Below the pieces are notes generated by a model. It made no database searches and was not told the DNA's origin. It was given only the letters and a program-made list of their open reading frames with translations. Of a stretch of DNA of 64,000 nucleotides, positions 14,962-41,400 are shown in pieces. Position 1 is the stretch's first letter, and each line of letters starts with the position of its first letter. The DNA comes from Macrostomum lignano (taxonomy: Eukaryota): contig NIVC01002566.1 of the NCBI GenBank assembly GCA_002269645.1, positions 1 through 64,000 of the forward strand, given 5' to 3'. The position numbers and the translations under genes are program-made.

Positions 14962-15355
14962 GTGCAGGCTGGGATCCATTAGTATGGCCCGTGAATACAT
15001 ATACCGGTATTTACTTACTTCCTACTATAAGTAGAATAAATAGGATATCCCGTTATTATTTATTCGACTGTCGAAAGGGCGCAGGGTAAACGTAGTTGCC
15101 CTGACTGGACAAATTGTGCGCCAGGGCGCTAGACGCGCATCGAAGGGGCGTAGGATAAAATGTATAGTGGGGCGTATATGAATTGCTCCACTGGGACACT
15201 CCTGTGTGAGCATGTGTGTGATTTGTGTGTCCGCGAACAGTATTGGCGCGCTTGTATAAGCTCAGGAATCAGTCAAATAGGCATAATTGTCTTCTTTCTA
15301 TCGACTTATTTTTTAAAATTGATAGTGAACATAAATAATAATTCCCCTCACCCAG

Positions 15356-18001: not shown

Positions 18002-21000
18002 ATGACCGACTCCAAGCAGACTAATATGCAGCCTCTTGTGCTGCACTCTCGGGTGCTTTCGCGTTTCGAAATTGATACGCCATCGCAGTACTTAAACCAT
18101 TACATCCGCCAGCATCGGGCCATCGAGCTGCCCAACGGCGCAATCGCGTTTCTGTCTCATAAGCCGGACGACTTTGATGACGACAGCAGCAGCAGCAGAA
18201 GCAGCTCCGATATCGGGCCTGCAAATATGAAATCCGGGGCTGACGATGAGTCGAATGTGTTCTACGACAATGTCGAAAATGATACGACCAGCTGCGACAA
18301 GGAGTCCTCAGCCGACTGCAGCCTGCAGAGAAGCCGATTCGCTTTGGTGTGCTTCAGCATCGGCGTTGGCAGACTGCACGAGCCGTCCGACTGTCGGGGC
18401 CTCGCCGAACTGTGCCTTCGATTGATTTTTTTCGCCTGCAATCATCCGCAGATGCAGAGTCTCGAGAGCAGCTTTGACGATACCACTGTTCAGACTCTAG
18501 ACGAATCGATCTGGAACCAAGAATCGCACTACCACGCTGAAGTATTCGATGACCGATCCGAGTGCAGCTTTGTGGTCGACTCGGACGTCCTGCCGGCCGT
18601 TCTGCGGGTGACTGTTTTTGCAATTAAACTCACTTGGCGGGGGTTGCAGCCTAATGGTTAGAGCGTCGGATTCACGACTTGAAGGTCGGGGGTTCGATTC
18701 TCGATCCCACTGGAACAATTTGTGTCCTTGACCAAGACACTTTGAGTGCCAGCATTAGCTGGTGTAATTGAGGGTGTGTGTGGCGATCCCCCAATCCTTT
18801 GACTGAACAGCCGTACGCAGCCTTCAGATGCACCACGCAATTGCTGCGGCTGAGCTGTCGGTTGCACATCTGCCCATTAGGGCATGCAATTACGAGTAGT
18901 TTAACACAGATGTAATTCGTATTTTACTGAGAAAAACAAATCAATGTCAAATGAACTAAAATGTAATGCTACTATAGATCTATTATATTCTAGCTTATAT
19001 ATAGTTACATTTAGGTTAAATCTAGAAGTCATGTTAGAGCTCAGGGGTCGCTTTTTTAAGACCAAAATTTCATAACGTCGAAAGCAATTGCATGGTCCTT
19101 CACAAGACCGAACTATCTAACTCTATCTTACCCTGCTCTATCTTACCCTTGATTCACACGAGCCAGCGGAACCAGTTAAGATCAGTAGCAAAGTTAGGAT
19201 GAATTCGATAAAATAACAAGTGAAGAAAAGATGTTAAACCCTCGCGTTAAGTATAATAAATTTTCCTCAAGCAACCTTGAAAGTTTAATCATCACAAAAC
19301 CCAGACTCGCAATCTGGCTGATTCCCACGGACCCTACACAATCGTCCGTCATCTCAAACAACTAATTATTAAATGTAGTTGAATCACCGGCCCACATAGA
19401 ATACGTGCATAGAGACCCTTTAAAGTGTAGTTAGACTTTTAAGCAGCCTGCACTCGTCCTTTACAATGCAGTCACCAAGCACCGGTGGCTTTTTGTAAGA
19501 GTATGCCTGTTAACAACTGCTACACTCCACCACATAATAGTAATAATAATATTTGATTACACCTGCCCCAATTGGGCCAGATGTGCAACCTGAAGGCTGC
19601 GTACGGCTGTTCAGTCCAAAGACTGGGGGTCGCCACACACACCCCAAACTAGCCCAGTTAATGCTGGCAGCCATTTTACAGCAGAGTTAACTGAACCAAT
19701 GCAAGTTAAGTATCTTGCTCAAGGACACAGATCGAGAATCGAACCCCCGACCTTCAAGTCGTGAATCCGTACTCCACCACGTTCTGATAACACTGCAATT
19801 TTTCTAATTCCTTAACCTAAATCCTATTCTTAATGGTCCCTCAAAAAGTCCCTAAATTATATCAGATTAAATATGATCCTTACCCATACTAAAATACAGA
19901 GCCTTGGCGCCAGCATAATGTCTCCAGAATTCAACGAAGTCTACATTGAACGCGAGCAGAAGAAACTGCGCTCAAAATGCCTACGTGAAGGCCTGCCACC
20001 GTTGGACCTTCTTGAGCGCAGTTCTGGAAATCCGGACCATCCGTTCAACCGCTTGGTGCTGGACAATGCGAATACAGTGGCCTCAATCGGCAGCGAAGAC
20101 GTGAAAAAGCGACTGTTTGAATTTCACGCCAAGTATTATTCGGCTAAGCTATTGCGGATGGCTCTCGTGTGCAGCAAACCGCTGGACGAATTAGAGGTTA
20201 GTCTCTTTTTTAACGAGTATCATTATATAGTTATTTCCAATTGTATATCCATACAAGGGCTGTGTATCTAACATAGCAGTGGTAAAGACCAAGACCCAGG
20301 TTCTGTACACCCAGTGTGCTTGTGAATGTTCTACACAAAAGCATGTCCAATGGTCCAGACTAGTTAAAAGTCACAGATTAGCCGCTTTGCCAACCTCACA
20401 TTTCAGGAAATTTTTGTTGAAGCATTCGAAAGTCTGCCCGGCGAGCCCGTTCCTCGCATCAGATTTAACTGTCATCCGTACGACGGTTCGGAGACTGGAG
20501 TCAAAGTAAAAGTTTTTGCGTTTTTGCGTTTTTGCTTTTTTGCCCATCGAAATGTTCTTTTATCATTTTTTTATCAAACAGTACTCAGCAGTCAAACAGT
20601 CAAACAGTACTCATAAACATAGACAATTACATAGACAATTCTCTAATTCTCTAATAGACAGTAATCTGTAATTTAGCCCCTGATGCTAAAGCCCCTGGTA
20701 CTACACCATTTTACCCTCGATTTTGAACAAGGAGAACTTCGAAACTGACAAACTCCTCTTCAATATTGACACTCTATGGTCGGGCACTCAAAATCTACAA
20801 TCAATATTGACAGATCAAGCTTCAATTTTGACAAACTCTGGTTCAATTTTGACAATGCACGTTTAGTCAACTTCTCCTGGGAGAATTCGGTAACAAAGTA
20901 ATCCAATGAAAGCCTGAACGGGGCTGAAGTGAGCTGTGCAAAATCAGCTTATTCTGACTTTGCTTTTTGGATCTACAAGTATTGATAAAATTTATTTTTC

Positions 21001-24000
21001 TCCATCCTTTACACACAGACTAAAATAGCCTGACTGGTTGGGCTGCAAAGTCTGATTCTATTTTGACAGAGTTGCTTCAAAACTGACACTCTATGGTTTG
21101 TGTACCCAAAAAGTCCGCTTCATTTTTGACAACTCCGAATCAATATTGAACAGTTAACAATCAATTTTGACTAAGACAGTTTTTGAAATAGATTTTGACA
21201 ATTTTTACTAAGATTTCTCTCTTGAGGGGGGGGGGGGTACTTGCTATTTGGGAGAAGGGGTACTGGCTGCATGTATCTACGAGTACATGTATATAGAGTG
21301 TCAGTTTTGAAGCAACTCTGTCAAAATAGAATCAGACTTTGCAGCCCAACCAGTCAGGCTATTTTAGTCTGTGTGTAAAGGATGGAGAAAAATAAATTTT
21401 ATCAATACTTGTAGATCCAAAAAGCAAAGTCAGAATAAGCTGATTTTGCACAGCTCACTTCAGCCCCGTTCAGGCTTTCATTGGATTACTTTGTTACCGA
21501 ATTCTCCCAGGAGAAGTTGACTAAACGTGCATTGTCAAAATTGAACCAGAGTTTGTCAAAATTGAAGCTTGATCTGTCATTCTTATTTGATTCTGCGTGC
21601 AGGATTGCTGATCTGGCACGCCCAAGCGTGCAGAATTGATGTTGTCTATGGCAAATTATCCTTTAGGTCTAATGCATCTTACGTGCAGGATTGCACTTTA
21701 TTTTTAGACAACAAGAAAACAACGAGTGAAAATTGGTTAATATCATTCCTAGTTTTTCGCTTGCGATCAGATGCTACTCAAATACAAATTCAATGACGTT
21801 GGTGTCACCATTGGCTCTAATCTTCAAATTCTTCCGATTTTCCGGAATAACTCGCACACAGCGCACCGAGCCCGACGTAGGATCGTTGATAACGTCAACT
21901 GGGTCACTAGCCTCAGTGCCTACAACTTGAGGGTCGGCCGTAGTAGCCACCTCCACGGCAGCCGTTAGTTGATGGCTCATAGCACAAATCGCTTGCTCTC
22001 GTTTATTCCCTCGTCGAATGTAGCGCTCGACGGATGCACCTCGCTTGTGGCCAGTCACTTTAGCGATAGTTTCGACATTAAATCCAGCGTCGTGAAGTTC
22101 TGTGATTACAGTTGCACGCACACACTGCACACCATTGTCAGTCAGAAACTTCTCGAAACGACCGACGGAAGCCAATTCCTTTGCAATGGTTGATTGACAC
22201 TGATTCTCACGTTCAACTTGCTGAGCAAGGCTCTCCAGTTCATCCAGACTTGCATTCGACATCGGGTCAGTCGCTAGCAGCTTCTCTAAATCGGCGTCAG
22301 CAATTGCATCCAACATGGGCAGCAGCCATTCGTTCTCTCTTTCCCACTTGCTAGAAATGGCTGCAATTGCCACCTCTTCGGATGACAAACCGTCGACGGT
22401 TGCGTATCGCATGTCCATAAGCGGAGGAAGAATCGACGGGTTGATTAGAGAAACCATTGCTTTGTTTTTATAGTGGCAACTAGCTTTCAATTGTAATCTC
22501 CTTTCGTTACCCCCTCCCCTCACCATCTCCAGCGTGCAAGATTGATTTTGTCTATGGTTAAAATGTGGGGGCTTCGCCCCCACGCCCCCAGCGGGGGCTC
22601 TGCCCCCACACCCCCGCTAGCAGCGGGTAATGTCTATAGTAATATCAATTATAACCTCCTTTTTTGGGCAGAATGTAAAATGGAAGAATCAAATAAGAAT
22701 GAGATTCATGCACGCCAACTCGTGCGTCTATGGCAAAGAGCACTCGTGCGCTTCGCGCACTCGTGCCTTTGCCAATGACGCACTCGTTAGCGTTCAAGAA
22801 TCCTAACAATATTGATTGTAGATTTTGAGTGCCCGACCATAGAGTGTCAATATTGAAGAGGAGTTTGTCAGTTTCGAAGTTCTCCTTGTTCAAAATCGAG
22901 GGTAAAATGGTGTAAAGCCCATGGTACTAAAGCCCATGGTGCTAAAGCCCCTGGTGCTAAAGCCCCTGTTGCTAAAGCCTCTGGTGCTAAAGCCCCTGGT
23001 GCTAAAGCCCCTGGTGCTAAAGCCCCTGATGCTAAAGCCCCTGATGCTTAAGCCCCTGATGCTAAAGCCTCTGGTGCTAAAGCCCCTGGTACTAAAGCCC
23101 CTGGTGCTAAAGCCCCTGGTGCTAAAGCCCCTGGTGCTAAAGCCCCTGGTGCTTAAGCCCCTGATGCTAAAGCCCCTGATGCTAAAGCCCATGGTGCTAA
23201 AGCCCATGGTGCTAAAGCCCCTGATGCTTAAGCCCCTGGTACTAAAGCCCCTGGTGCTAAAGCCCCTGCTGCTAAAGCCCCTGGTGCTAAAGCCCCTGAT
23301 GCTAAAGCCCCTGATGCTAAAGCCCATGGTGCTAAAGCCCCTGCTGCTAAAGCCCCTGATGCTTAAGCCCCTGATGCTAACGCCCCTGGTGCTAAAGCCC
23401 CTGCTGCTAAAACCCCTGCTGCTAAAGCCCCTGATGCTAAAGCCCCTGGTGCTATAGCCCCTGCTGCTAACGCCCCTAGTGCTAAAGCCCCTGGTGCTAA
23501 AGCTCCTCGTGCTAAAGCCTACATGAGTACGTCACTGTAGGAGTAGCTTATCGCTGCATCCTAATTAACACAGCTCAAAATGGTAGCTACGCGCTAAAGT
23601 TTCTGATAGGCGACAGTTTTATTAGAAAGTCTTCCAGAATAACAGTTTTTTTCAATAAAAATGCTAACAATGTACCTAGCGCCCTTTCTATGATCATCTG
23701 CAAGACACTGCAACTAATCTAAAAAAGACATATTCATCGACGACACTTACTTGCAGCACATTTTGCTATTTTGCCCTACGGCAGGTTCGTACGGATTGTT
23801 TAAACTCGAGATTCTGCAACACAGTCGAGATTGTGTTTCCCCTGCCAGACCAGAGTCCGCTGTACAAGACCTCGCCAGACCTGTACGCTTTGTTGATGCT
23901 GCAAAAAAGCGGCAACAATGCTCACTAGAGGCCTGCCTCCACCGACACGGTCTGGGCTTCTGCGACGTCGGATTGTTGGACAGAGGAACTCTGGGCTTCG

Positions 24001-27000
24001 ATTCTTTTCACATCTGCATCAGGGGAATGAAAAATGTTCGCGACAGTGAAGATCGGGTGAGCGGAAGTTATGCTTTTTCAATTATTTAGCAGTTAAATTG
24101 CTTTTTATCTAGAGTCTTACGTTTTAAGTGCTTAAAAGAATTATAAAAAGAGCAAATGGCATAATACTACCATAGAGAAAATGTAAGGCTACATTCTGTA
24201 TCACGTGTTGGAAAAATCCGGCCGATAAAGCCTTTCCATCTGGCCTTTAAAACTTTTGTGTTCCTTACTACCAAGACCTTCTTAGTAATCAAGGAACAAT
24301 CACTTCTAGCTACTGCTAGGCAACCCAGTAATCAAATGAAGGTATTTATTACCTTGAGTCCTGACTAGTCGTACTCTTCCTGTGAGTTGATCTCGCAATA
24401 GGATTCAGTTAGATCAGTTGATCTGGCGCCTTACTTCTTGTTCTGGTCCGAGTCTTCTTTGTGCTCCTTGACTTCTTGCCGGCCGGTGTGGTATCTGTAG
24501 TTCGGACCAATAGGAAGCTTCGAATTAACTATGGGATCCCTGCGCCAATCTGCGGTTTCAATTAAGCCTTCTCCTTCTAGCAGTGCTTCAATGCACTCTA
24601 GGTATAGCTCCGGTAATCACTGATAGTCCTCTAAGATCCATCAGGGTAGCCTTCTGGAGACAACAACCAATGGAGTCTTAAAATAGACTCTAGAGTCTCA
24701 ACAGACTCAAACACAACAATAATAATAAGTCGACTCAAACAACGGGCGCAAATGAGTAAGGCTTACCGCAAGAACTCGACCGAGTCTCTGTAGGAAGTCT
24801 TCGTATTGCTTCCTCTTCGGAGCTTCTCCTTCTGGAGTCTTGTTGTTAGCTCCGGGTCGGCTTCGGACCACTTGTATTTATAGGCAAACGGACCCCTCGC
24901 GAGGTCGTCCATCACATTTTCGTAAATGTCAAAAGGTCGCGCTTTGGTGGCTGTCAAGCATGACAGGGTAGAAGGTTAAGCAACTGGTCTAGTGTAGCGC
25001 GCATGATTGGTTACCGTAGCTGGGTTAATTGGGGCTTTCTTTGATAGGTTCACCCGGTGCAGGCCGGATGATGAATCGCAGGTGGGGTTTAAACTTGACA
25101 ATTGTAGGTCACACGTGATTGGTCGGCTGCTAAAATAGCATGTTCGAATTTTCTTTCTTGTGATTGGTTGATTAAAATATATCTGTGATTCAGTACTTGT
25201 TATTATACATGCTACTTACTATACTACTGAATAAAACTTATAAGTAGTATTTTAACTGTTTTATGTCTTTTTTACGAGAGGTAGAAAACTCTACAAAACT
25301 TCACAGTAGCAACTCGGCCCGCTAAAGGTTTGTGTCGCTTTTAAGCTTTCTTCTCTCCCCGCTCTCTCTTTTTATCTCTCATCTCATCTATCTTGTTAAT
25401 CTCTATCTATTGAATTGTATTGTATTCTATCTATCTATTGATCTCTATCTATCTCTATCTCTTTCATTGAGTTGTATCTTTTACCTGACGTTTGAGCCAA
25501 GAAAGCTCGTCAAGCCCTGTCCAAGATATTACTTAAACACCGGTAGGGTTCAGAGTAGCCCCGAATCAGTGGAATCCTGGCGGAATCCTGCGTCTAAAGT
25601 ACGCCCTGTTTATGACCCACTACATGCCTGATAGCTAAAAACCAAGCCCGTTGTACACAACCCTGTACGAGTGTTGTGTTATCCTATGATAGTCATGGGT
25701 CAACAGGATGAACAGAGTTGCTTACATCCTCGCTACCTTGGTGTTGACTGTCGTCTTCTCGATTTTCAGCAATGCTATCCACCTCGAGAATGAACTAACT
25801 AGCAAACGACAACAATAACGGAGGTTTCAACATAGCTTATCTAAACAATATGAATTAGCTTTGTTAAAATCCTTGTTTTTAACATATTGCAGGCAATCAC
25901 TGCCGTGTTTCGGTACCTTGCCATGCTTCGAAAGCTTGGACCGCAAGAGTGGTTGTTCGAGGAAGCTCGCCTAGAAGGCCAAAAAGCCCTTGATGTCGGT
26001 CTAAACGACTGGGAATACTATCCATTTGTTCGCAGCAATATCTGCCTTCAGCGATATCCGATGCAGGACCTGCTGAGAGCGCATCGAGTGCCATGCGACT
26101 ACTCGCCAACAATAATATCCGAATTCTTGAATTTGCTGACTCCCGACAGATGCAAAGTGTACGTTTTCGAAGCTGGCGTCAACAAAAACTGTCCAAGTAA
26201 GTGCTTGAGTTAATACGGTACAGAAATATTTAGCTAAGTATTCAGACTTGAAGGGAACAGATGAATGAAACAGCATGTTTTTTACAAACTAGGAACCTTT
26301 AGCTTTTGTTAAAATCTTCATCTTTTTTAGATAAAAAGGTTAATATTGACACAGTTCACTCGTACAATGTATGTTGAGTGATCATGTCGATAATTTTGTG
26401 AAAGTGCACCAGGCTGCACTATTTTCAAGCACAAATATTTGAAAGTATAGTTAATGAGAAATCTAAGCGTCCACGTCCCCTCAAAAGGCTTCTTTCTAAA
26501 ATCATTCCTTATTATAGCGTAGACCACAGATACTATATAACTAGATAGGTCACTCCCTATCTCGCTGTGGGGACCAAAAATGATACTACTCTTAGGACGG
26601 TAGTGTAAATGCAAATTATAAGAAACATTCTTATCAGTGACTAAAACGAAATCGATCGGAAATGAAGTTTTCAACCATATGCACAATCTTCTACAGTGTA
26701 CATTCTTGACTCAAGGACTACTTAAGTAGAAGGACGCAAGACTCAGAATTGGTGAAAATTTCATTGATGGCCGATTTTTCAATGTATCTCCTGTGTACGC
26801 TATTGATCGTAAGATGCTTATTTTTGCGCAGAATAGGCAGCAACATATGCCCTTTCATTTAAGACATCAATAAGTTGAAAAATTCGGACTTGAAACACCT
26901 CAAAATTCTTGTCAGCAGTACAATCCTATATACTAAAAAATCATCTAAAATTGCTGATTTTATTGTCAAAATAAACAAGAAGAAAACGTCAAAACAGACG

Positions 27001-30000
27001 AAACTGCAAACTGGCAAGGTAGCAGAAACAGGAAGAAAGACGACCTAGCAGGCGACGACATCATCGGTGGCGTCCAATTCGTCGCCGAATTCTTAGTCGA
27101 GGGCGTCCAGATCCGCGGTTGACGCTCCAGGGCCGGCTTTTGTGATCTGACAACATTGAGCGGCGACGATGGCAGTGCCAGCTGCTGCTCGCGGGCGCGT
27201 TTGGCCACCGGCGGTGTCCGTGGTGACGACAATCGGGGTTGGAAGTCATCGTCGTCGTCGCCGAATAGTTCTCGTTTAATTCTGCTGCTGCTAATCGGCT
27301 GGCCCGGTGTCTATTCGTCACTGTCCGGGACCACGCTCGCAGTGATCATAACATCATTGTCGTCGTCGGCCGCCGCCGCCGGGCCAATAGAGCCGGGTCG
27401 CTGCGAGTCGGTCACTAGCAAAGATGCTATCTTCTGCTGCTGCTGCTTTTGGTGGTGCTGCTTCTGCCGCTCGGGCAATTCAGCAGCAGCTTCGGCAGCT
27501 TCAGCTTCGGCTGCTTCGGCAGCGGCAATCAGATCGTCAGCGTTAATCTCGTCGTCTTCGAAAAGATTGATGGCAGCCGCAGCATGCTCGCTGCAACCTC
27601 ACAGCTTAGCTGCTCCTCCAGAGCTGCCTGCCGCTCGGCTTCCTCACACGCCTTGATCAAGTCATCGACATCTTCGGTATCTTCGGCATCGTAGTTGTCC
27701 ATGTCGCACCAAATATTTAATTTTTTAATAGGAAAGTGCACTGAAAGAACTGAAACAGCAACAGCAGCGACTAAAGCGTTGTCTTGGTATCCTTTCTCCT
27801 ACTATATATATGACTGGGCACCGCTGTTAATTTTGTTGTCTATGGCTAAAAGACCCTTTTGCTTGACCAAGCAGAAGAAGAGAGAGCCATATCTATATAT
27901 ATATTTTTTAGGAAAAAGTGCTAGGCATCGCTGCGGCGCAGTGCTATTAATATGTTTTGTCTATGACACGAACTCGACAACTTGAATACTGCTTTACCAT
28001 GCACGCATGCAGAAAATGAATCTCTTCTAAACCTGCTTTATCATGCAGAGCCGCTTTACCAGAGCACACGTTTGCAAAATTGATTTTTTATTTTGGCTAT
28101 TTTTTACTACTAATGGCTGGTCCTAAGAGTAGTGTGAGAGTAAATTAACCGAATGACCTATCTAGTTATATAGTATCTGTGGCGTAGACCAACGATCATA
28201 TATACAGATATATCAAAGATCTATGGTGTAGACTTGTAAAACTTCGCAAAAGCGTCTTCTTATCCGAATTTTTTTGCTAACGTCCATCTGTATGTAGCTG
28301 TCTATGGCCAGTCCTGCCCACACTCCGGCGCGGTGCCGCACAGCGTCAAGAAGCTGGATCCCGACCTGCTGGCAGTCTGTAAAGCCGATTGGCCTTCACC
28401 AAGCATTGAATTCGACGCTGATCTGGGCTTTCCTCAGCCAACGCCTGTGGATTGCTTAGTAAGCTGGGTGCTTGTCTGAGGACTGAGGACTGATGACTGA
28501 GAACTTTTCGTCGATTAGTTAAAGCTATATAGATCACTTGTAGTATTTTAATCCTCCAACATGTTTTAGGCGGAGTCAGTGTCAATAAGTCAACAAGACG
28601 ACAGTTTGGCATTGTCGCGCATTGCTCGCCGTCATGACAAACTCCTAGCCTTGCCGTCATCTGACTGCTCATTCCACGTCATTGAGCTGACAAACGGTGT
28701 CCAAGCTATCCTGGCCAGTCGAAACAGTTTCGGAGGCCAGGAGAGTAACGAAAAATCGCTTGTGTGCGCCACCCTGGGCATTGGGAGACTACACGATCCG
28801 ACTGACTTTCGAGGCTTAGCAGAGCTGTGCCATCGCCTCACACTGGTTGGATCGAAATCGACGCCTCAAACATTCGATGGCTTGAACGACCTGCTGCTAG
28901 ACAATAGTTGTGAAGAGAATGTTGAATATGCCATGGGGGTACACGATGACCAATCGGTGTACAAGTTTACTGTTCCAGCGAGTCTAATTCCGGAAAGCCT
29001 GTTTCGCCTAGGCTGTGGATTGGTCAATCCCGAAATTAACAACGAAAGCGTCGAACGCGAGCTGCTGTCTGGTCAGTTCAGGCGCCAGATTCTAGCCCAG
29101 GACTGGTTGGAGCGCTGCTCGGGAAATCTCACTCATCCCTACAACCGAATGGCGAAAGGTGCCCAGAAAACGATTAGATCCTACACATCCGAGGAAATAA
29201 AAACTCGCTTGATTGCATTTTTCAATGAAAACTACTCTGCGAACTTGTTGAAGCTGGCTATAGTGGACAGCAGGTCTCTTGACGAGTTGGAGGTTAGTTA
29301 GCGAGCCGTATAAAATATCGATCCTATTGGAAGTAGGCACACTAATACTCGCAAGTTAATAACGAAGCCTTCAGATATGCGTGGTTTAATAACTTTGTAC
29401 TCATTGCAGAAACTGGTGGCAGCTCATTTTGGAAGCATGCGGAATTTGTCAATCAACCAGTTGAAGATTTCAACGCATCCGTACGAAGGAACATTGATAG
29501 GCGTAAAGGTAGGTGCTTCAGACTTTATGTGTGTATTTTTGTGTACGTTTAATAGCAGCAGACAAGGAGTATACGACCCGTAGACTCGCAAATTAGAATG
29601 TCACTTTAGAGAGCGCACTTCTTGTTCAGCTTGGTTCCCCGACCAGAAGTAGAACCCGAGGACGCTCTAACCTATGAGCCCCTGCCTAAAATTACACAAT
29701 AGCTTACATTGGTTCCCGACCACAAAAGTAGAACCCGAGGACGCTCTAACCTATGAACCCCTGCCTAAAATTACACAATACACTTAACTAATCTAGGTTC
29801 GCAGCAACTGTCTGAGTTTAGGTCGAAAACTTTACATGGTTTTCCCCTTGCCGGAGCAAACAAAACTGCACTTGACTTCGCCGGACATGCTCGTGAGCTA
29901 CTTGATCAACAACCGGTGCAAGGGGAGCATTAGCGACTGTCTCGAGCGGCGTCATTTAAGTACAAACGTGTTTGGACAACTGGTCAACAGAGGTTCTGTA

Positions 30001-33000
30001 GGCTTCGACTCCTACTGCGTGACTGTTTTCCACCAGAATAAAGAGTTGGAGATGGCAGAGAGTGAGAACAAGGTGTGTACGAATAGCGATTTACATGCGT
30101 TTTATTGTTGCGTATATCACACGCTGTTCTTTCTAGAGAAGTCGTGCGTCGGACGCATTCATGTCACTCACGACTTGAAGGTCGGGGTTTGATTCCCGAT
30201 CATACTGGAACAATTTTTGTCTTTTAGCAAGACACTTAACTCTGCATTGTTTCAAGTTCACCCAGCTGTAAAATGGGTGCCAGCATTAGGAGGAGCAATT
30301 AGGGGTGGTGTGTTGCGATCCCAAAGTTCTTGGACTGAACAGCCGTACGCAGCCTTCGGATGCGCCGCCCAATAGCTTCGGCTGAGCTGTCGGTTGCACA
30401 TCTAGCCCAATTAGGGAAGGTTTAATGAATTATTATGTTTTTATCCTCTTTAAGAAGAATCTGACTGTAAAAAAGTTTTCACAATGATCGACAACCTTCA
30501 ATAAACTTCAATAAAAATCAGACGTACGCGTCTATTGGTTAAAATACCTTTTAAAAAATTTCACTATCGCAAGCTTTTAAGCTCATATTTTACAGACTCA
30601 GTAAAATACCACACTTATCTTCAGATAATCACAATAGTATTTCGCTATCTCGCAATGCTGCGCCAAATTGGTCCACTGGAGTGGCTCTACAACACTTTCC
30701 GCGTAGAAAGACGCAAGGGTCAGACATTTGACGACGAAAATTCTTCTACTGGGCCTCGTTGGAAGCTGAACCCGTTGCAGTACTACTGCGACCAGCTGCT
30801 AGAGTGCCACATGCAGCGCTACCCTCTCGAGAGCTTGTTCACTGCTCGGTACGCGTTGCCTGAATACTCGCCTCGGGCCATTACTGACTTCCTGGAATTT
30901 TTGAAACCCGATAATTGCAAGGTGTTCGTTTCGGGCTTGGGCACAGACGAGTCTCATATGTGCACCTTTCTGTGTAAGTTGTCCTTTAATCTACAAAATG
31001 GTTACTAATTAAGTATCGGATAATTTAAAATCACTTATGACGTGATCTTCTTCGTTAGATTACTGATTATTCGATCCTTTCACCCGCAGCTCCTGATGGC
31101 AAGCTCTGCTGCGAGCCGGATGGCCCAAATTTCTGCAGTATGGAAAAGCTCAAACCGGAACTGATTGCCACCTGCTCAGCTGCTTGGCCTTCTTCATCGT
31201 GCGAGTTCGATACCGAGCTGAAGCTGCCAAAACAGAATCTGTTTTTGTGCTCCGATTTTAGTCTGAGGCCCGACGAGACAACTGATCAGGTCGGTATAGA
31301 TTCCTTGCGGAGCGGTGATGCGGTGGTCCAGACCTGTGTTAGGGTAGGTTAGGTTAGGGTAGTCGGATAGCTATAATTTTAAGAGAAGCTTTTCGTGCTG
31401 CAGCTAATCAAGTCGACCGTTGAATCGCAGACAGAGTGGAAGCACACGCTCACACATGGTGTACAATGCCTATGACTTCATGGCTGAATATGAATTGCAA
31501 GAATTGTACGGAGGAGTAGTTGCGTTATTGTGTCGACCTTTTTTTGATTTCAGCAACCACCAGGACTGCGGCTGCTACGATTCGAAGCCGGGCCGCACAC
31601 ACCAGCCGCTCGCTTTTGGTTCCAGCAGGATAACAGGCTCCAGACTCCGATTGTCTTCATCTCAGTCGATTTGGTGACTTCGCCTGAGCCGCTTGTGACC
31701 GACTGCGCCTCGTCCGTCATGCTGGATATTTTTGTCGTGCTCCTAGTCGACCAGCTCAACAGCCTTGAAAGCCAAGCCAAGCAGGTTGATCTACGTTTAA
31801 AAGTGTCGCGCAGCAAACAGGGCATTCAGGTGTGCTGCAGCGGCTACAGGCAGCCCCTGCCAAGTCTTGTGGCTGCCGCTCTGAGTCGGATTTTTGAGCT
31901 GAAGATTACGGAACATGCATTTCGTAAGGTAAGCTGTGCACAGTGTCTAACTAGAATTTTCCCGCCGACGAATATTTCCTGACGAGTTTGGCCTTGGGGA
32001 TTCTTCTTAACTGCTCTGAACATATTTTTATAAGAGGCCAGCTGTTGAGGGGGCGCCAGCTACAGAGGGGACGTCAGCTACAGAGGGGACGCCAGCTACA
32101 GAGGGGACGCCAGCTACAGAGGGGACGCCAGCTACATTGGGATGCATTAATTGCCTACATGGATCATCGGCTCAGCAAATATAAATTAATGGGTTATCAA
32201 TCTCCTCATTGTTTCAGGCTCGACGGAAAATATCTGCCCTGGAGGCGCAGAAAACGCACAAAACGGACTTGTGCAAGTCGCAGCTTGCTATGCTACTAAA
32301 TAGCGCCTGCTCTTGGCACTGGTCGTATCAGGATAAAAGAGTCGCTATTAACGGTATGTTTGCTAATATCTAAATATTCAATACAAAAATTCCAGACGAA
32401 CTCTCTTCTCTACAAACCTTCACTTCAGAAACAACTCTGGAGAACTTCATGATATTTGTCCAGCGATTCAGCAGTCAGATTCAGCTATCGTCGCAACCGC
32501 AACGTCTGGTCAGCGAGGACGAGGACGAAGAGGACAAACGAACTGACGCGGCTGTTGCCGTCATGAGCCTTTGGTCACGAATCTCCCTAGCCGAGGACGA
32601 AGAAGTCGTAGAGGAGAGCTCCGCGCTGCAGCAGACACTTCAGGAGGAGCAAGACCAGCAGCAGAAGCAGCAGATTCCGCGCCAACTGTTTGCCGAGATT
32701 CTCGTTTATGGCAACGCTACAGCTAAAGATGCTGAAGCAGCCAGTCAAATCATTTTGAACGCGCTGCCATCACCGACTCAGCGTACCACTGAGACAACAT
32801 TTGAAGCAGTGAGGCGTCGAGTGTATCTACTCCCCAGCGGCAGCCATCACGTGCTCCAGCTGACAATATCTGCTAATTATCAGAGGAAATCAGGGTGCGC
32901 TGTAGTACTTCAGGTGCCAAAACCGGTGCCAACTGCCGACACAAATATGGGCTTTGAAGACGCGATTAGACAAGACTGCTTGTTTTATCTGCTAATCGAG

Positions 33001-34184
33001 GTTTTGCAATGCCGCGGCGAGATGATCAATGACCCGTTGGATCGAGCTATAAAGATACTAATACAGAGAAATTATCACGCCTATGTTGTTACTTTTGACG
33101 TTGTGGATTCACAGCACCCGACAAAGGTAGGCCGATATGTGAGAGTAGTGAATGAACAATGTCACTGAACCGAAAGGGTAGGCTGATGTGTGAGAGTAGT
33201 GAATGAACAATGTCACTGAACCGAAAGGGTAGGCCGATGTGTGAGAGTAGTGAATGAACAATGTCACTGAACCGAAAGGGTAGGCCGATGTGTGAGAGTA
33301 GTGAATGAACAATGTCACTGAACCGAAAGGGTAGGCCGATGTGTGAGAGTAGTGAATGAACAATGTCACTGAACCGAAAGGGTAGGCCGATGTGTGAGAG
33401 TAGTAAATGAACAATGTCACTGAACCGAAAGGGTAGGCCGATGTGTGAGAGTAGTGAATGAACAATGTCACTGGATCGAATCAGCTGCTTGTTTCCTATC
33501 GCTCTTTTTTTCCAGATTGAAGAACAAGTGGAAAATTATATCGAAAAAATTGGAGATTACATTTCCTCTCTGTCAGAGGAGTCATTCCTATACTGCTTAT
33601 CAAGCATGGAGAAGTCGATGCGCAAAGAAATTCCTACTACTGTCCAGGAGCAGCACGATTCCCATTGGCGCAGCATCACTCACGGTGTACTGCGCTTCGA
33701 CCGGGACGCAAATTTGGCCAAGTGTTTAGACGCAGTGGTTGGAGGCATCAAGAAGGATTGTCTGCTTGAACTATGGCGGGTAAGTAGCAAAGTACCAGTT
33801 TTTTTACCAGCGTTTATCAGATTCAACTTGAACTCAAGTTGGAGCTTATATAATTAGTCTTGTATAATATATACCGTTCGCGCCGCTTCCAGTCCTGCTT
33901 AAAGCGGGGATCTCCGAACCGGCGCAAGCTGTGCATCCATCGAATCTCCAGGGCGGCTTTCCCCGACGGCATCAGCGAGGCTGACTACGCTGATTACCCG
34001 GTGAGTCCTGAAGCCATACGCACTTGTTGACTCTTGTAGCGTTGGATGCGTTCTCCTTAATTAATTCTCTAAAAAAATCTATTTCCAGGGAACCATCATA
34101 CGTAACAGAAATCTTTTCAAGCAAAGCCTGCTGCTAAGTCCCTTGCCATCGGTGCAGAATTTGCGTCCGAATTCTGATGTCTAA
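18002..34184 (+). CDS. Gene A: insulysin/IDE-like M16A pseudo-peptidase with a duplicated N-half (N1-N2-C), ~1,700 aa, 17 exons; one frameshift in exon 4
   Basis: Exons: 18002-18607, 19900-20196, 20407-20505, 23785-24056 (272 nt, frameshift at an A-run ~23905), 25893-26196, 28298-28458, 28570-29292, 29410-29508, 29797-30072, 30625-30973, 31090-31289, 31554-31928, 32218-32353, 32396-33126, 33516-33779, 33893-34000, 34089-34184. All junctions are GT-AG with consistent phases. IDE landmarks: ELPNG/ELTNG, GxGRLHxP, HPxNR, YSAxLL, HPY, VFRYLAMLRKLGPQEWLF, RYP, FWFQQD, VYGNA, RRKLCIH, FKQSL. Confidence 0.85.
18644..18882 (+). mobile_element. tRNA-headed SINE (A box tggttagagc, B box ggttcgattc) with a Meta-SINE-like central core
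   Basis: The head, tgtgtccttgaccaagacactt core and 3' tail are shared with six other copies in the window. Confidence 0.85.
19567..19790 (-). mobile_element. SINE copy, same family
   Basis: Reverse complement of the 18644 element. Confidence 0.8.
20704..22912. mobile_element. Foldback/MITE-type DNA element with 391-bp TIRs and a TA target duplication
   Basis: Left arm 20704-21094. Right arm 21293-21579 plus 22809-22912 (391 bp in total, split by an insertion). Ends CACCATTTTACCC…GGGTAAAATGGTG are flanked by TA inside a 15-bp minisatellite. Confidence 0.9.
21580..22808 (-). mobile_element. Internally deleted Crypton-like tyrosine recombinase element
   Basis: It interrupts the right TIR of the foldback element. 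ORF 22583-21774 has QCVRATVITELHDAGF…IAKVTGHKRGASVERY (YR C-terminal RHRY-type residues) fused directly to an N-terminal STIAKELASVGRFEKFL segment. attcttatttgattc (21579) is inverted at 22687, and there is a gtgcgc-ttc-gcgcac hairpin near the end. Confidence 0.75.
22913..23520. repeat. 15-bp minisatellite (gctaaagcccctggt), ~40 copies, with 2 further units at 20675-20703
   Basis: Read directly; the VLKPL and GFSTR ORFs are by-products. Confidence 0.95.
24206..25832 (-). mobile_element. Probable solo LTR (~1.6 kb)
   Basis: Bounded by TGTTG…CAACA. On the minus strand there is TATAAATA at 24875-24882 and AATAAA at 24345-24350, ~140 nt before the end. No matching TSD was seen. Confidence 0.5.
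26990..27706 (-). pseudogene. Decayed acidic/Ala/Gln-rich coding-like fragment in intron 5 of gene A
   Basis: MDNYDAEDTEDVDDLIKACEEAE… continues across frameshifts and stops (FEDDEINADDLIAAAEAAE…, ELFGDDDDFQP). It is GC-rich relative to its flanks, with no recognisable domain. Confidence 0.4.
29627..29781. repeat. ~80-bp tandem duplication in an intron
   Basis: aagtagaacccgaggacgctctaacctatga(g/a)cccctgcctaaaattacacaata occurs twice. Confidence 0.8.
30146..30416 (+). mobile_element. SINE copy, same family
   Basis: cacgacttgaaggtcgggg…cacccagctgtaaaatgggtgccagc…gctgagctgtcggttgcacatc. Confidence 0.85.
32046..32135. repeat. 18-bp minisatellite (gaggggacgccagctaca), ~5 copies
   Basis: Read directly. 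Confidence 0.85.
33122..33472. repeat. 51-bp tandem repeat, ~7 copies, spanning the exon 14 splice donor of gene A
   Basis: Unit aaagggtaggccgatgtgtgagagtagtgaatgaacaatgtcactgaaccg. The first copy contains the real donor AAG|gtaggc at 33126/33127. Confidence 0.9.
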
Positions 34185-35437: not shown

Positions 35438-38400
35438 ATGCAACAGAGCCTAAAGCTTCCACAGCAGCAGTCGCCATCCCAGTCCAAGCAGCCTGAATCG
35501 GTAAATCAGCGACCAAGTGTCACAATGTCCATAAAAGTTCGCGACAACAATGTACCCTTAGTAAAAGGAATCGAAGCTTATAAGCACACAAAACGACGAT
35601 GCCTGGAGCTGTCGAACGGTGCCAGTGTTCTTCTTATTAGCTGGTCAAACTTGGAGCAGATTCAGGGCTTCTTCGATCCCTACAGCGTGTTTCTTTGCGT
35701 GAACCTCAACATTGGCCGGCTTCACGACCCACCCGATTGTGTAGGCCTTGCCGAGTTGTGCCAACGACTGACGCTCTGCGGCTCCAAAAAATATCCGAAC
35801 GACGAGCAGGCTGGTAAGTCAGTCAGTCCGTCTGAATCTGCTTGGCTAATTTTGCGGTGCGCTGTGGCTTTTTAAAATGGAACAGCATTTCAGCTACTAG
35901 CTGAAAGACCTAGTAGGGACGATTGACAATTCACCTGCACACCAAAATCTCGTTAACCGCTTGGTGATCAGGATGCTAGCACACCCCGGTACAGTATACG
36001 ATCGCTACTCGTACGACGTACATGTTGCTCTGGTGCATCTATAACTGGTTAAAATGCCACGACGATTGATGGTTCAAGTTATTGAATCACCCTAATCGCA
36101 GTCTAATCGCAGTCCTCCAAGGACTGGGAGGTAGCCACACACCCTCAATAACCCCAGCTAATGCTGGGTACCCATTTTACAGCTGGGTGAACTGAAGCAA
36201 TGTAGAGTTAAGTGTCTTGCTCATTACTCAAGGACACAAATTGTTCTAGTGGGATCTGGAATCGAACCCCCGGACCTTTCATTAGGGAGTCCAATGTTCT
36301 AACCACTAGGCTGCAATCCAGTTAACATTTAGTAATGTTAATAAACATTGTTTAGTATAATATCCGTGTTTGTTTTGTACATTGTTCTGAAAAAAGTTTT
36401 GGTGTATAAGAGATCCCTAGGGAAATCAAAATTTGGTTCTTACTCAAGAAAAAATGCGAGTTGCTGACAAAACTGCGCCTAATTTGCAGGTCTGCTCACG
36501 AAAGTTCAGAGAGAAAGCAGCTCATACTCAGAAGAGATCACAATCGGGCAGCCGCAACAAGAAAGCCATAGCAACTCAATATTGTCCGAATCATTCGATT
36601 TCGACCCGCTCGCTCGAATTGAGGTCACCGAGGATCAGACAATTTACACTTTTACCCTGGAAACCAACTATCAGTTGGAGATGTTTCTGGACCATCTCTG
36701 CGCCGGGTTGCAGTGTCCGCTGTTTAACAAGACGGCAGTGGAGCGGCAGGTGCAAATCTGGCAGGCAGTCTCTAAGACGAATGCGCCCTCCCTAATAGAC
36801 CAGTTAGAGCACTGCTCGGGTGACGCCAAGCATCCCTACAACCGGCTGCACCGTCAAAGTGGCCGAACTGTTGATAAATTATCTACCGATGAGCTAATTA
36901 ACCAACTGAAAGAATTTCACTCGAAAAACTATTCCGCTAATCTGTTGCGATTGGTGCTGTCGTATGCGAAGACACTGGACGAAATGGAGGTTCGTAACAG
37001 TCGTTAATATGTGGTTGTAAAGATTACCATGGCTATAAATAACTTATGCACCAAATACTCGAATTGACAGGCAATGGTGCTGGAGTCTCTGGGTGGAATG
37101 CAAAACTTATCGCTTCCACGTATTCGCTTTCCTCGTCACCCGTACGATGGTACGGAAATGGCAGTAAAGGTAAAATTGTGCCGTAAGCCTGAAGCCAATT
37201 CTTTCAAAGTATTTCAATTTTTATTGCGCCAAGAGACACAAAAAAGTTTATAAAAATAAAATGGCAACACATTAAAATTCAGCCACAAGCAAAGCTAGCG
37301 TTTTAAGATAGGCGACTCATCATTAACCACTTATGTGGCCATAGAAACTAATGTGAAAATTTAGCTACTCGCGTCAGCGCAAAGACAAAGCGTCCAGTGT
37401 TTACTATCGAAATGTCTATAAATCAACAGTACTTTGTACGTTTGCAGAAGGTCTTAATTGTTTATTATTACACTAATTACAATATTTCAGATATACTTGG
37501 CCTTATGACACATATTTAATTTTGCTAATTTTTACGTTTTCCCAGACATCGGAAGTCGTTTCCTTTTACGAGTATTTCATTTGAACCCAAAAACAGATGC
37601 AATGAAAAATTAAATCAACAACATTAACCGAGTAATTATTCGAATAGAAAAGTTTTAATAGTAGTACCAATAGTCGTTCAGAGTGAATAATATTACTATT
37701 AAAAGCCTAATAATTAGCGAAGTTAAATCCGTGGGCTTTATTATATAATCTACGTGGTACTACTCACAAACATAATATATTAACGGTTTGATAGTACAAT
37801 GGAGTAAAAACTGTTTTACTGCCGTGTACAGCTGATTTATAAGAAAATCTAGTATAGCGTCTTTCTACGTGTTCTTCATTCGTCTGTGCCTCCATGGCTA
37901 CATGTACGCCACCACCAACAAATTCTACGAGAAAAGGTGATAAGACCTTGAAAACCTATCAACTCATTCTGTAGGTTCGCATCAAAGGTAAATCTCTCGG
38001 TGGAATTTACATTGTGTTCGCACTGCCAGACCAGTCTACTAAGTATCTGTCGTCGCCAGATTTATTCTTAACCTTTCTGATGCACGTTGACGAGCGCGGC
38101 GGGTTGCAAGACTGTCTGCAGAGATTCGGACTGGGCTATTGTCAGTGCCGACTGTTGCCTAGCGGCAATCTAGGCTTTGATTCGTACTGCATCGCCATCA
38201 AAGGCATGTGTAAAGTTCGCGATGCGGAGAACAGAGTGAGTAGATCTATATGTGCTCAGATTATATAAAGATTGGTCAAAATGCATATTAAATAGTCTCG
38301 CTGTAGAACGGAGAGGTGAACTTAGGTACGCGGAGTGGGGCTCAAAGTAGAGCTCGAATCACAGTGGAAATCTTACCAGACCAGTTCGGGACACTCGGCA

Positions 38401-41400
38401 GGGTTTCATGGTAGGAAGTTTATCAGACACATCACGAACTGGCTGGGACACTTACGAACAACTATGCGCTATCGTGAAAGGGGTTGTCTTGCGATTCAGA
38501 GCCATGAGGCTAATCCCCAAGGTACAGAATGTGTACATAACCTGACAAATAAAATATCAGGGCCGATGTACACCCTGTGTGAGAGCGTTTATGAGTTCCC
38601 AGTGCCTGCTTACAGTATTGGTACACTTGTATGGGATCAGGAGTCTGCAGAGTGGGCTGAATTGCTAAACGGCTGGTTGTAGGACGATGTAGCCAAACGC
38701 GTTGCACCATAATTAATGAATAATTAACAATAAATATATGCACTTGTTTCTGAGCTGTGTAACGAATCAATACTAGACTTCCACGTATTATACATTTTCA
38801 TGTACACCTGTTATATTTAGCGCTCCATTTGCCAACACGCAGGCAATTACAGCAGTGTTCCGCTACCTGGCGTTACTGCGCGCCGTTGGTATCAACGAGC
38901 TTCAACGCAGAGAAATCTGTAAAACGCACGAATTGACTTATAATCCATTTAGTTTAACCGAGTTCGGTCCGCCGCCCGAGTGCCTGCCGCGGCGCATGCA
39001 GCGATATCCGCTCAGAGACCTGCTAGTAGCTCGTTTTAAAATGTCAAACACCGGGTCCGGCGTGCTCGTGGAATTTCTTAGTAGCTTATCACCGGATCGC
39101 TGCAAGGTTTTTGTTTCCGATACCAATGCCAGCAATAGGGAAGGTGCAGCCAGTCAGTGTAAGTGTGCATTTTTACCCAGTGAACCGACACACTTTAACA
39201 GCGTAATATTTTGCCATTTTTGCCTCTTTGAAACGTTCCCCGGGAAGTGACAAAAACGATTTGAAAAACGTTGGCCATATACAATACTTCAGTTGATTGA
39301 TTAGATGTTGTCAGCACTCATTTTAGCGTCGCAGGCACTCATTTTGGCGCCGCGGACAATCATTTTGGCGCCGCGGGCAATCATTTTAGTGCCGCAGGCA
39401 CTCATTTTGGCGCCGCAGGCACTCATTTTAGCGCCGCGGGCACTCATTTTGGCGCCGCGGGCACTCATTTTGGCGCCGCGGGCAATCATTTGGCGCCGCG
39501 GGCAATCATTTTGGCGCCGCGGGCAATCATTTTGGCGCCGCGGGCAATCTTTTTGGCGCCGCGGGCAATCATTTTGGCGCCGCGGGCAATCATTTTGGCG
39601 CCGCGGGCAATCATTTTGGCGCCCCAGGCTCTAATTTAAGCACCATGCAGCAAAATTTCCAAAATGGGTCACAAGGTATGGTGGGGGGGGGGGCAAAGCA
39701 TTGGCATGTCCCCCCCCAAATCTTTTACTGGCGCCCCTGTCCCCCCGTTGGCGACGCCCCTGCCCTTCATCTCACCCCACCCCCAACTAGAGATTAAAAG
39801 CTTTGTAATACATCGGTAGGTATTGACGCAAAAGTAGAGTACTTTATAATAAATATCAATATATTGTAAATAGTCGTAAACAAAGTAAACAAAGACATCG
39901 TCATAAATATATAGATGATGTCAAGACACAAAAATGGAGTCAGAACACAGATTTTGGGGGACGCAAAGAGGTATATTTACGTGGGCATAAATAATAAAGA
40001 AAAAAGGGTAAAAGTTAAAAGCAACGAAGAATACAATCTGCAAAAACTTTTTTACTTTTTTTACAAAGGGTCTAAGTGTATTCGGCCAAGTACTATTAGG
40101 TTAGCTTCTTGCCACATAACTAAGTTTAGGTTTTCACGAGCGTGAATGACAGAATCATAAGGCCAGTTGAAGTGTCAGTTATCGATAGTATCATTTTTTT
40201 TCACAGCCCCAGACAGCAGCAAGCCGGGAGAGCGCGTCAAGTTTACAGTGGAGAAAATTCCATCGGAGCTCCTGTCGGCTTGGGCCGCCAGCTGGCCGTC
40301 GAAGTCGGAGTTCGATGCCGACTTTATTCTGACACCGATCGGTCCCGATCCGACGCTGCCTCGTCCGCATCGATTTTTGCCCTGGAAAATTCCCTCGGAG
40401 GTGAGTGCGAGTTTAGCAATGAAAAATGTCTTGCTGGAAATTTTTATGCTGCCATAAATAAAATCAATAGACACATAGATTAGCAGAAGGGTTGTGTTCA
40501 TCCTAACGCAGCGCCTTCGGCGACATCGTCTCACACCCAAGTCTGCCCATTTCGCTGACTCCTGGGCAGATACAAGCGTGCAAACACTCGTACACACGCT
40601 CACACAGGGTTTAAATCGGCTCTAACTTTCAAATCGTCAGGCATGTAGACTCTCTGGGCCCTAAGTTAATGCGAGTCGCATTAAAACCTCCCCAGCCAAT
40701 TTTCGTGTGCACAATCCCTTATTTAATGTGGCGTTCGGGAATGGGACGTGTTTACACTCTGCTCTCATTTATAATTACGTGTATACTATGATATCTTAAG
40801 TAAGATGCCTCTTTAAAGTCGCTCATAATAATCCGTTTCTCTACCCTACAGTTCTCTACTATTCGATCAGAGTCTTCAACGTTGATAAAATCTCGTTGCA
40901 ACGATCTCGGGGCACCGGTGTCGCTCGAATACGCTACGACAAGGTGCAACTGCTTGGAGTTAACGAACGGCGCCCAAGCCATCCTGCTGCACAGCGAAAG
41001 TCTTGAAAATAAATCATTCGTCTGCGTCAGCCTTGGCGTCGGTCGGTTGCACGACCCACCGGACTGTGCGGGACTGGCTCAGCTGTGCCAGCGCCTGACT
41101 CTGCTTGAGTCGAAGAAGTATCCAAACATAACCGAGTGCTTGCACAATCTTCTCTATATAAACAGCTATCAAGGGTCGCCGTACTACGCGACGAGCGTTT
41201 CCGACGACCAGACAACTTACCGGTTCGAAATCGACAATTCATTCTTACATGAAAGTCTAGACCGACTTAGTGCGGGTATCCTGAGCCCTGAATTTACCGA
41301 GTCTAGTCTTACCCGTGAGCAACATCAGAACTTCTACAGTTGCAAGATTTCTGCCTTGGATTGCCTACAGCGCAGCTCGGGAAATTCAACTCATCCGATC

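Follow-up and report, generated by a model that had tools for sequence, protein, structure and literature searches.

An insulin-degrading-enzyme-like gene pair of Macrostomum lignano with a duplicated N half and no M16 zinc-binding motif

Introduction

What becomes of a protein built like insulin-degrading enzyme (IDE) when the residues that make it a peptidase are gone? The question is raised by two adjacent genes, A and B, on contig NIVC01002566.1 of the flatworm Macrostomum lignano (assembly GCA_002269645.1), of which positions 1 to 64,000 of the forward strand (the window) were analysed. The catalytic signature of M16 metallopeptidases consists of HXXEH, a distal Glu and an R/Y pair, and members that lack the motif are inactive (PMC12731061). 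In genes A and B the motif is missing from four N-terminal modules, two in each gene. We report that each gene codes for an N half in duplicate followed by one C half (N1-N2-C), that purifying selection acts on the coding sequence, and that the products are probably proteins that do not cut and that bind, hold or scaffold through the IDE clamshell fold.

Results

Zinc-Site Residues Are Replaced in All Four N Modules

A sequence-only reading of the window had pointed out four nonapeptides in which the HxxEH motif is lost. Their positions (Table 1) proved correct, and they align with GLxHFCEHM of IDE: each nonapeptide lies within a match to Peptidase_M16 (PF00675), and a phmmer search against PDB paired A_N2 (the N2 module of gene A) with IDE residues 47-267 (E = 1.7e-12), with GLAELCHRL opposite GLSHFCEHM. 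The modules were then read against 80 full-length homologues, chosen as HxxEH-bearing and numbered through a fish IDE with the offset checked on HFCEH. Positions 108, 111, 112, 182 and 189 are H, E, H, E and E in 80/80 of these homologues. The same positions in A_N1, A_N2, B_N1 and B_N2, respectively, are E/E/E/Q (108), L/H/Q/Q (111), R/R/R/R (112), E/E/Q/E (182) and gap/Q/V/Q (189). In place of the HxxEH of an active M16 zinc metallopeptidase, the modules therefore carry ELCLR, ELCHR, ELCQR and QLCQR. The distal Glu ligand of such an enzyme (IDE E189), whose absence had also been noticed by eye, is likewise missing from all four modules. As can be seen in a separate L-INS-i alignment, the E189-bearing helix has a deletion of 3-6 residues in every Macrostomum module, and the aligned gap/Q/V/Q fall inside it. 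Neither HxxEH nor HExxH was found along the whole gene A and gene B proteins.

The recurrence of the motif remnant in the window reflects homology of the four paralogous modules, not chance. It had been described as a conserved replacement, which is accurate for Arg112 and Glu/Gln108, the only conserved residues among the replaced positions. The description does not extend to position 111, which is variable, or to the flanking G105, L106, A107, C110 and L113, which are ancestral IDE residues. The motif is more diverse in relatives, where GLSQLCNEI, GLARLCQRL, GLAELLAGM and GLAELCAEL were found.

Genes A and B Share an N1-N2-C Architecture

All-against-all comparison of translated fragments of the window revealed four paralogous exon sets and a repeated "X" module. 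The X modules (15154-16874, 32374-34027 and 48817-51168) were considered as a separate gene family and rejected as such, being IDE domain 4. The exons of gene B were solved for protein PAA53923.1 (1650 amino acids, aa) on contig NIVC01002999.1 and mapped gap-free onto the window; all 17 exons have AG acceptors and, save for one GC, GT donors. The window translation of gene B is open and differs from the allelic protein P0002 at 14 residues. The translation of gene A is open apart from one frameshift. The donor of its exon 1 is uncertain: it is either 18586 or a stronger-looking AG/GTGACT near 18604 used with acceptor 19902 (read by eye, unscored).

Exons 1-6 of both genes encode N1, i.e., IDE domains 1-2 and the linker (about IDE 45-545); exons 7-11 encode N2, which repeats the same IDE span; and exons 12-17 encode the C half. 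In gene B, the exon sizes of N1 and N2 match up (99/99, 261/285, 316/355 and 194/203 nucleotides, nt). The architecture amounts to a four-domain IDE-like unit that is complete in itself (N2-C), with an extra copy of domains 1-2 and of the linker between the halves in front of it. Predicted proteins of a third paralogue, Z (1602 aa, Mlig021631/Mlig015450), are also N1-N2-C.

One intron present only in N1 is placed differently in the two genes, after FVVDSD in gene A (18586/19900, ~IDE 155) and after NDEQAG in gene B (35813/36490, ~IDE 125), which suggests independent intron gain or sliding. A Cys pattern (LCCxP...CxAxWP...C) that is not present in IDE was noted repeatedly, both in paralogues and in several of the modules here, in the linker exons at 31090-31289, 43701-43903 and 28298-28458. 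Cys makes up 3.0-3.3% of the gene A and B proteins compared with 1.5% of fish IDE, and the linker pattern could form a disulphide or metal site.

Both Modules Are Predicted to Fold as IDE Halves

Homology to M16 domains is evident from matches of the four N exons to PF00675 (up to E = 1.3e-12) and from matches to PF16187 (up to E = 6e-18), and phmmer aligned B N2-C with IDE at E = 1.9e-44. An AlphaFold2 (AF2) model of B N2-C built from an 84-row alignment had a mean predicted local distance difference test score (pLDDT) of 83 and a predicted template modelling score (pTM) of 0.86. When this model was submitted to Foldseek, human IDE ranked first (E = 3e-54, ~1080 columns) with a template modelling score (TM) of about 0.5, a value that suggests a hinge angle in the model unlike that of the closed IDE crystal forms. 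The N1 model of gene B, built on the P0002 allele sequence (99% identical to gene B of the window), had pLDDT 82 and pTM 0.84 and matched IDE with TM 0.70 and a root-mean-square deviation of 3.6 Å; it contains a disordered insert at residues 137-163. Thus, N1 and N2-C both appear well-formed as IDE halves in the models. Subfamily M16A is characterised by a single chain of about 1000 residues whose four alpha/beta domains make up two linker-joined halves; this arrangement is found in B N2-C, with the additional N half ahead of it.

Homologues consisting of a single half all align to N2 only. A joint N1+N2 model was dropped because these rows cover N2 alone and because rows of full-length IDE might force the two modules into a spurious N:C-like pairing.

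The Motif Was Lost Before the Duplications

A word-indexed protein search with the B_N2 exon gave no match. When 1.84 billion representative proteins were searched exhaustively, two near-identical matches 1653 and 1650 residues long came up, and the motif was tallied in the best 150 representatives. Six of the best 7 matches are M. lignano proteins (P0001, P0002, P0004-P0006 and P0010), all without HxxEH, and the seventh, ant protein P0003, has likewise lost it. The matches ranked just below these seven are ordinary nematode IDEs, at about 1e-25. HxxEH is present in 139/150 of the best representatives. Databases label the M. lignano relatives by domain only.

A neighbour-joining tree included eight HxxEH-less M. 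lignano modules, namely N1 and N2 of genes A, B and Z and the N modules of two single-N paralogues. All eight group together at 100% bootstrap as a single clade, which a long branch separates from the active IDEs. A_N2 and B_N2 pair at 76% bootstrap, and the remaining order inside the clade is unresolved. Since the eight dead modules form one clade, the loss predates both the duplication of the N half and the gene duplications, in agreement with what the sequence-only reading had proposed; a single loss at the base of the M. lignano clade would be the simplest reading.

Damaged motifs were also seen in independent IDE paralogues of two other lineages. The Steinernema carpocapsae IDE paralogue TKR69938.1 (P0077) has GLANLCKKM and keeps E189, and Dinoponera quadriceps XP_014469183.1 (P0003) has HLCQH and HLCQR within one 1835-aa model. 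The IDE active site has been lost after duplication more than once (nematode, ant and Macrostomum).

The Coding Sequence Is under Purifying Selection

The modules share only 35-44% protein identity, and synonymous sites are saturated both between genes A and B and between N1 and N2. The ratio of non-synonymous to synonymous rates (dN/dS) was estimated by the Nei-Gojobori method from a comparison of the window with a second copy of the locus, which is found on three other contigs with 95-98% DNA identity. Overall dN/dS was 0.22 (35 non-synonymous and 46 synonymous differences; p = 5e-11 against neutrality), with values of 0.20 for gene A (21 and 30 differences) and 0.26 for gene B (14 and 16 differences). 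The ratio was 0.13 for the two N1 modules together (p = 4e-8) and 0.12 for the C half of gene A. The dS values (0.014-0.027) are near or under the intron divergence of 0.025-0.039. A match for gene A, BOX15_Mlig028065g1, has a baseMean of 118 in a published RNA sequencing (RNA-seq) table (PMC12896417).

We conclude that purifying selection maintains the coding sequence and that the genes are not decaying. The outcome that would have spoken for decay, dN/dS near 1 with no expression, was not seen. The hallmarks of a pseudoenzyme, i.e., loss of catalytic residues, purifying selection and expression, are present, expression being documented by RNA-seq for gene A. The earlier statement that the genes had stayed open holds for gene B, with its intact frame of 1650 codons; in gene A, the N1 frame is broken by a 1-nt deletion in exon 4.

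The Catalytic Cleft Is Remodelled beyond the Zinc Site

N139-A140, kept in 77/80 of the HxxEH-bearing homologues, reads D-E, N-V, N-S and Y-Y in A_N1, A_N2, B_N1 and B_N2. The domain-4 pair R824/Y831, kept in 78/80, has become K/Y in gene A and Q/H in gene B, so that the R/Y pair of an active M16 zinc metallopeptidase is absent from both genes; the alignment is gappy here, and equivalence is less certain than in domain 1. In the single-N paralogues P0004 and P0005, R824/Y831 falls in an alignment gap.

Taken together, the replacements imply that the gene A and gene B proteins would be unable to work as zinc peptidases. Since the zinc ligands and the cleft residues are all remodelled, capture of peptides at the cleft in the manner of IDE is disfavoured as well. 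Peptide trapping, one of the roles first suggested for these proteins, is therefore weakened in its IDE-like form, the substrate-gripping N139/A140 and R824/Y831 having been replaced.

Table 1. Coordinates of the genes, junctions and motif remnants in the window
Feature	Position	Strand	Description
Gene A, locus Mlig028065	18002..34184	+	17 exons, ~1680 codons, N1-N2-C; spliced mapping of P0155/P0001, GT/GC-AG sites
Gene A, exons 1-9	18002-18586, 19900-20196, 20407-20505, 23785-24056, 25893-26196, 28298-28458, 28570-29292, 29410-29508, 29797-30072	+	
Gene A, exons 10-17	30625-30973, 31090-31289, 31554-31928, 32218-32353, 32429-33126, 33516-33779, 33893-34000, 34089-34184	+	
Gene A, N1-N2 junction intron	28459..28569	+	111 nt, phase 0, GT-AG, in frame, ...PVDCL/AESVSI...
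Gene A, exon 4 homopolymer	23903..23908	+	A6, A7 in another contig; N1 frame shifted
A_N1, HxxEH-helix remnant	18398..18424	+	GLAELCLRL; H108 to E, E111 to L, H112 to R (alignment)
A_N1, third-zinc-ligand helix remnant	19945..19968	+	IEREQKKL; E182 equivalent kept, E189 within 3-residue deletion
A_N2, HxxEH-helix remnant	28813..28839	+	GLAELCHRL; H108 to E, E111 to H, H112 to R (alignment, phmmer)
A_N2, E182-E189 helix remnant	29050..29076	+	VERELLSGQ; E182 kept, E189 to Q, with deletion
Gene A, domain-4 stretch aligned to IDE LRTxEQLGY region	32992..33075	+	R/Y pair is K/Y
Gene B, locus Mlig000040	35438..51341	+	17 exons, 1650 codons, intact, N1-N2-C
Gene B, exons 1-9	35438-35813, 36490-36989, 37071-37169, 37975-38235, 38843-39158, 40207-40400, 40852-41550, 41624-41722, 42009-42293	+	
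Gene B, exons 10-17	42764-43118, 43701-43903, 44171-44557, 46248-46386, 48845-49413, 49875-50144, 51034-51138, 51246-51341	+	
Gene B, N1-N2 junction intron	40401..40851	+	451 nt, phase 0, GT-AG, in frame, ...WKIPSE/FSTIRS...
B_N1, HxxEH-helix remnant	35744..35770	+	GLAELCQRL; H108 to E, E111 to Q, H112 to R (alignment)
B_N1, E182-E189 helix remnant	36738..36761	+	VERQVQIW; 182 is Q, no Glu at 189
B_N2, HxxEH-helix remnant	41071..41097	+	GLAQLCQRL; H108 to Q, E111 to Q, H112 to R (alignment)
B_N2, E182-E189 helix remnant	41308..41331	+	LTREQHQN; E182 kept, E189 to Q, 6-residue deletion
Gene B, domain-4 stretch aligned to IDE LRTxEQLGY region	49279..49359	+	R/Y pair is Q/H
Gene Z remnant (Mlig021631/Mlig015450)	15355..16972	+	Last exons, 332 aa, domain 4 only

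The Surrounding Locus

The window contains short open frames interrupted by GT-AG introns, with many satellites and minisatellites; an Rfam scan of the window was empty. The locus record of one related protein matches 14027-44184 at 100% identity across 30,158 bases, with coordinates that agree with those of the contig, and the related proteins bear M. lignano names. In the other copy of the locus the gene order is P0005 (a single N-C gene), Z, A, B. Upstream exons of gene Z were looked for in the window and rejected, as none is there and similarity to the other copy sets in only at 15196, abruptly and within a Z intron. The first ~13 exons of Z are missing from the contig, a structural variant or a misjoin.

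Tandem satellite DNA fills the contig start (positions 1-4677; 181-base-pair (bp) units, about 26 copies, 90% matches). Two introns of gene A are much longer than in the other copy. Intron 3 measures 3279 bp (476 bp in the other copy) and contains extra DNA at 20676-23531 with long inverted repeats (20676-21119 and 21226-23048), a 15-bp minisatellite and a 280-aa open reading frame (ORF) on the reverse strand (21777-22616) that weakly matches the tyrosine recombinases (PF00589, E = 0.006). The extra DNA has the look of an inserted mobile element. Intron 5 (26197-28297) measures 2101 bp (437 bp in the other copy), a second large insertion. The stretches 22908-23519 in the gene A intron and 43263-43644 in a gene B intron belong to one 15-bp minisatellite family in opposite orientations, and further gene B introns house a 43-bp array (44920-45865, 22 copies) and a 19-bp array (46656-48432, 94 copies).

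Adjoining ORFs of 479 and 197 aa on the reverse strand (8355-10330) are transposase-like by eye and have no Pfam match at E <= 0.01. Downstream of gene B lies a low-complexity ORF of 672 aa (52574-54589) with no Pfam match, which the UniProt model P0160 (2104 aa) fuses to gene B. Exons of a Cys-rich, extracellular-looking gene with a weak thrombospondin type 1 match occupy 58009-60586 on the reverse strand.

Discussion

We consider it likely that genes A and B encode selected, non-cutting IDE-like proteins of N1-N2-C architecture that act through their clamshell fold, and we infer a non-proteolytic role for both. The retained fold would work without hydrolysis, by binding, holding or scaffolding. 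Since the substrate-gripping cleft residues are gone, ligand recognition probably differs from that of IDE, and the ligands or contacts would probably be unlike those of the enzyme.

Several points weigh against this explanation. The inactivity of the proteins is read from sequence. Expression is documented for gene A only, from a whole-animal table; for gene B the sole indication is a locus tag apparently named for a transcript cluster. Taken alone, N2 and C of gene B have dN/dS values of 0.75-0.9, on only 7-8 differences each. The gene A copy of the window may not yield a full N1-N2-C protein given the 1-nt deletion in exon 4. Other copies carry deletions as well: the overlapping contigs NIVC01002999.1 (L001) and NIVC01004151.1 (L003) share one in gene A exon 7 (GATCGAAAT to GATC-AAAT) and one in gene A exon 14 (GCTCCAG to GCT-CAG), both absent from contig L004, and in one of these two contigs gene B exon 6 also lacks 1 nt. 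The exon 7 and exon 14 deletions account for shortened annotated proteins (742 aa) and for 25 residues skipped in P0154. Some gene copies in this polyploid genome may thus be degenerating. Three of the four indels lie in runs of at least 2 identical bases (A7, GGG and CC), and all may be either consensus errors of the long-read assembly or real nulls.

The former zinc site itself may have been filled anew. By IDE geometry Arg112 would lie near Glu182, and it may pair with Glu/Gln108 (i, i+4 in the same helix) and with the retained Glu182 to form a charge network; such an exchange of zinc for Arg is offered only as a hypothesis. A three-half chain cannot close as one clamshell; therefore, N1 is either free, competing with C for N2, or pairing between chains. 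One may go further and picture a "three-half" M16 architecture in which N1 competes with N2-C or adds to it (N1:N1 pairing, a larger cage), an Arg-Glu contact replaces zinc, and the flatworm-restricted tandem family P0005-Z-A-B has evolved to bind or hold ligands in a novel role that has nothing to do with degrading peptides. This fuller proposal is speculative and, as a whole, doubtful.

A regulatory partnership with active IDE is a narrower form of the binding, holding or scaffolding role, and it could also take the form of regulation of one another through mixed oligomers. IDE functions as a dimer and many pseudoenzymes act on active paralogues; moreover, the C half with domain 4 is kept and selected (0.12 for gene A), and at least 5 paralogues exist, partly in one tandem cluster. 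Given, however, that no active M. lignano IDE was identified in the searches made, and that the proteins are only about 20% identical to IDE, we regard regulation as unlikely.

It could also be argued that N1-N2-C is an artefact of gene modelling, N1 being either a truncated gene in its own right or a block of dead exons, with only N2-C made. The NCBI models on this contig do start within N1, at 24027 in gene A (PAA56843.1, spanning 24027-34184) and at 37074, in exon 3, in gene B (PAA56844.1, 1357 aa). Spliced-leader trans-splicing, which M. lignano uses (PMC8629364), could make internal 5′ ends. Both NCBI models nevertheless cross the N1-N2 junction. The gene A coding sequence begins at the next Met because the A6 run shifts the N1 frame. 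Exons 1-2 of gene B (35438-36989) are intact, and the stretch of protein that they encode is identical in the allele PAA53923.1, with 1 synonymous nt difference; this allele, on the other contig, is annotated at its full 1650 aa as N1-N2-C. We take the NCBI models to be transcript-derived. In both genes the junction introns are canonical and in phase 0, no stop interrupts the last N1 exon ahead of the junction, and paralogue Z proteins are predicted in the same N1-N2-C order. In addition, dN/dS is lowest for the N1 modules together (0.13), and gene B N1 is predicted to fold well. An artefact is, on this evidence, quite improbable.

The genes might instead be decaying pseudogenes, leftovers of tandem or whole-genome duplication with few disabling mutations so far. 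The four 1-nt deletions (one in the window, in gene A exon 4, and three on other contigs, in gene A exons 7 and 14 and gene B exon 6), the adjoining truncated remnant of gene Z and the high dN/dS of B N2 and B C, based on very few changes, fit this view. It is hard to reconcile with ~1650 open codons and 16 canonical introns per gene despite 35-44% module identity, with overall dN/dS of 0.22 (p = 5e-11), with the confident fold prediction and with transcription of gene A; three of the four indels, lying in base runs, may be consensus errors. We therefore consider decay highly improbable.

Finally, that the proteins are still peptidases with a different metal site or a non-metal mechanism is scarcely credible: it has no direct support beyond the richness in Cys and the linker cluster (LCCxP...CxAxWP...C), which could bind metal but lies away from the cleft and is missing from B_N1, while H108, E111, H112, E189 and the R/Y pair are lost, neither HxxEH nor HExxH occurs in either protein, Arg occupies the zinc-ligand position in 4/4 modules, and motif-less M16 members are known to be inactive (PMC12731061).

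Among known systems, the best match of B N2-C in both sequence and fold is IDE/insulysin (MEROPS M16A; human IDE, PDB 2G47 and 3CWW among others). The likeness to non-cutting IDE-like proteins such as those of genes A and B extends to the four-domain order, the Pfam domains Peptidase_M16, M16_C and M16_M, the lack of an evident signal peptide and the conserved GxGxxxDP, YSANL, FPxPD and RYP motifs. Unlike IDE, genes A and B have lost HxxEH, E189, N139/A140 and the R824/Y831 pair and gained a leading N half; their proteins are ~20% identical to it, on a long branch, and the predicted hinge differs (TM ~0.5 for the whole unit, 0.70 for one half). A catalytically inactive IDE (E111Q) is reported to act non-proteolytically on amyloid-beta and alpha-synuclein (PMC3623905 and PMC4521159), so that a clamshell without catalysis can bind or hold peptides. 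In that case, however, the property is engineered or incidental, with the zinc site and cleft intact, whereas the cleft of the gene A and B proteins has diverged.

Inactive M16 proteins that are kept under selection include MPP-alpha (PMPCA/Mas2) and the bc1 core proteins (UQCRC1/2), which share the fold and the absence of the zinc motif and function with no cleavage of their own (PMC12731061). The analogy drawn with them at the outset stands to the extent that an inactive M16 protein can be retained. It fails in that they are two-domain M16B proteins of about 450-500 residues that pair with a separate active or structural partner, whereas genes A and B encode single chains of 1650-1680 residues with three halves. 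In these fused M16A chains it is the N half, ordinarily the catalytic one, that is dead, and they have no known active partner. MPP-alpha and core II, furthermore, carry a glycine-rich loop replacing the R/Y pair. When such a loop was sought in both M. lignano proteins none was found, the richest 15-residue window containing only 4 Gly. Lineage-specific IDE duplicates with partial loss of HxxEH, as in Steinernema TKR69938.1 and Dinoponera XP_014469183.1, are similar in kind but lie outside the Macrostomum clade and have another architecture: the Steinernema protein keeps the E189 helix, and the Dinoponera model is apparently two whole IDE units, judged by its length and two N-half matches.

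Within the library searched, no paper was found on these locus names or on Macrostomum with IDE or M16, and the supplements of PMC5730564, PMC5816591 and PMC5946080 have no entry for these genes. Automatic annotation gives the genes peptidase and zinc-binding Gene Ontology terms (PMC12896417 table), which are almost certainly wrong. We therefore describe here a lineage-restricted, tandemly expanded, dead IDE-type family with an internally duplicated N half, previously undescribed.

Inactive M16 proteins have been known mostly as M16B partner subunits. Here, zinc site, catalytic base and R/Y pair have all disappeared from a lineage-specific fused M16A family whose dead N half has been duplicated within the gene, and selection still maintains the family. 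Since transgenesis is established in M. lignano (PMC5730564), the animal is genetically tractable and allows one to ask what a non-cutting IDE clamshell does, a question that bears on the debated non-proteolytic roles of IDE.

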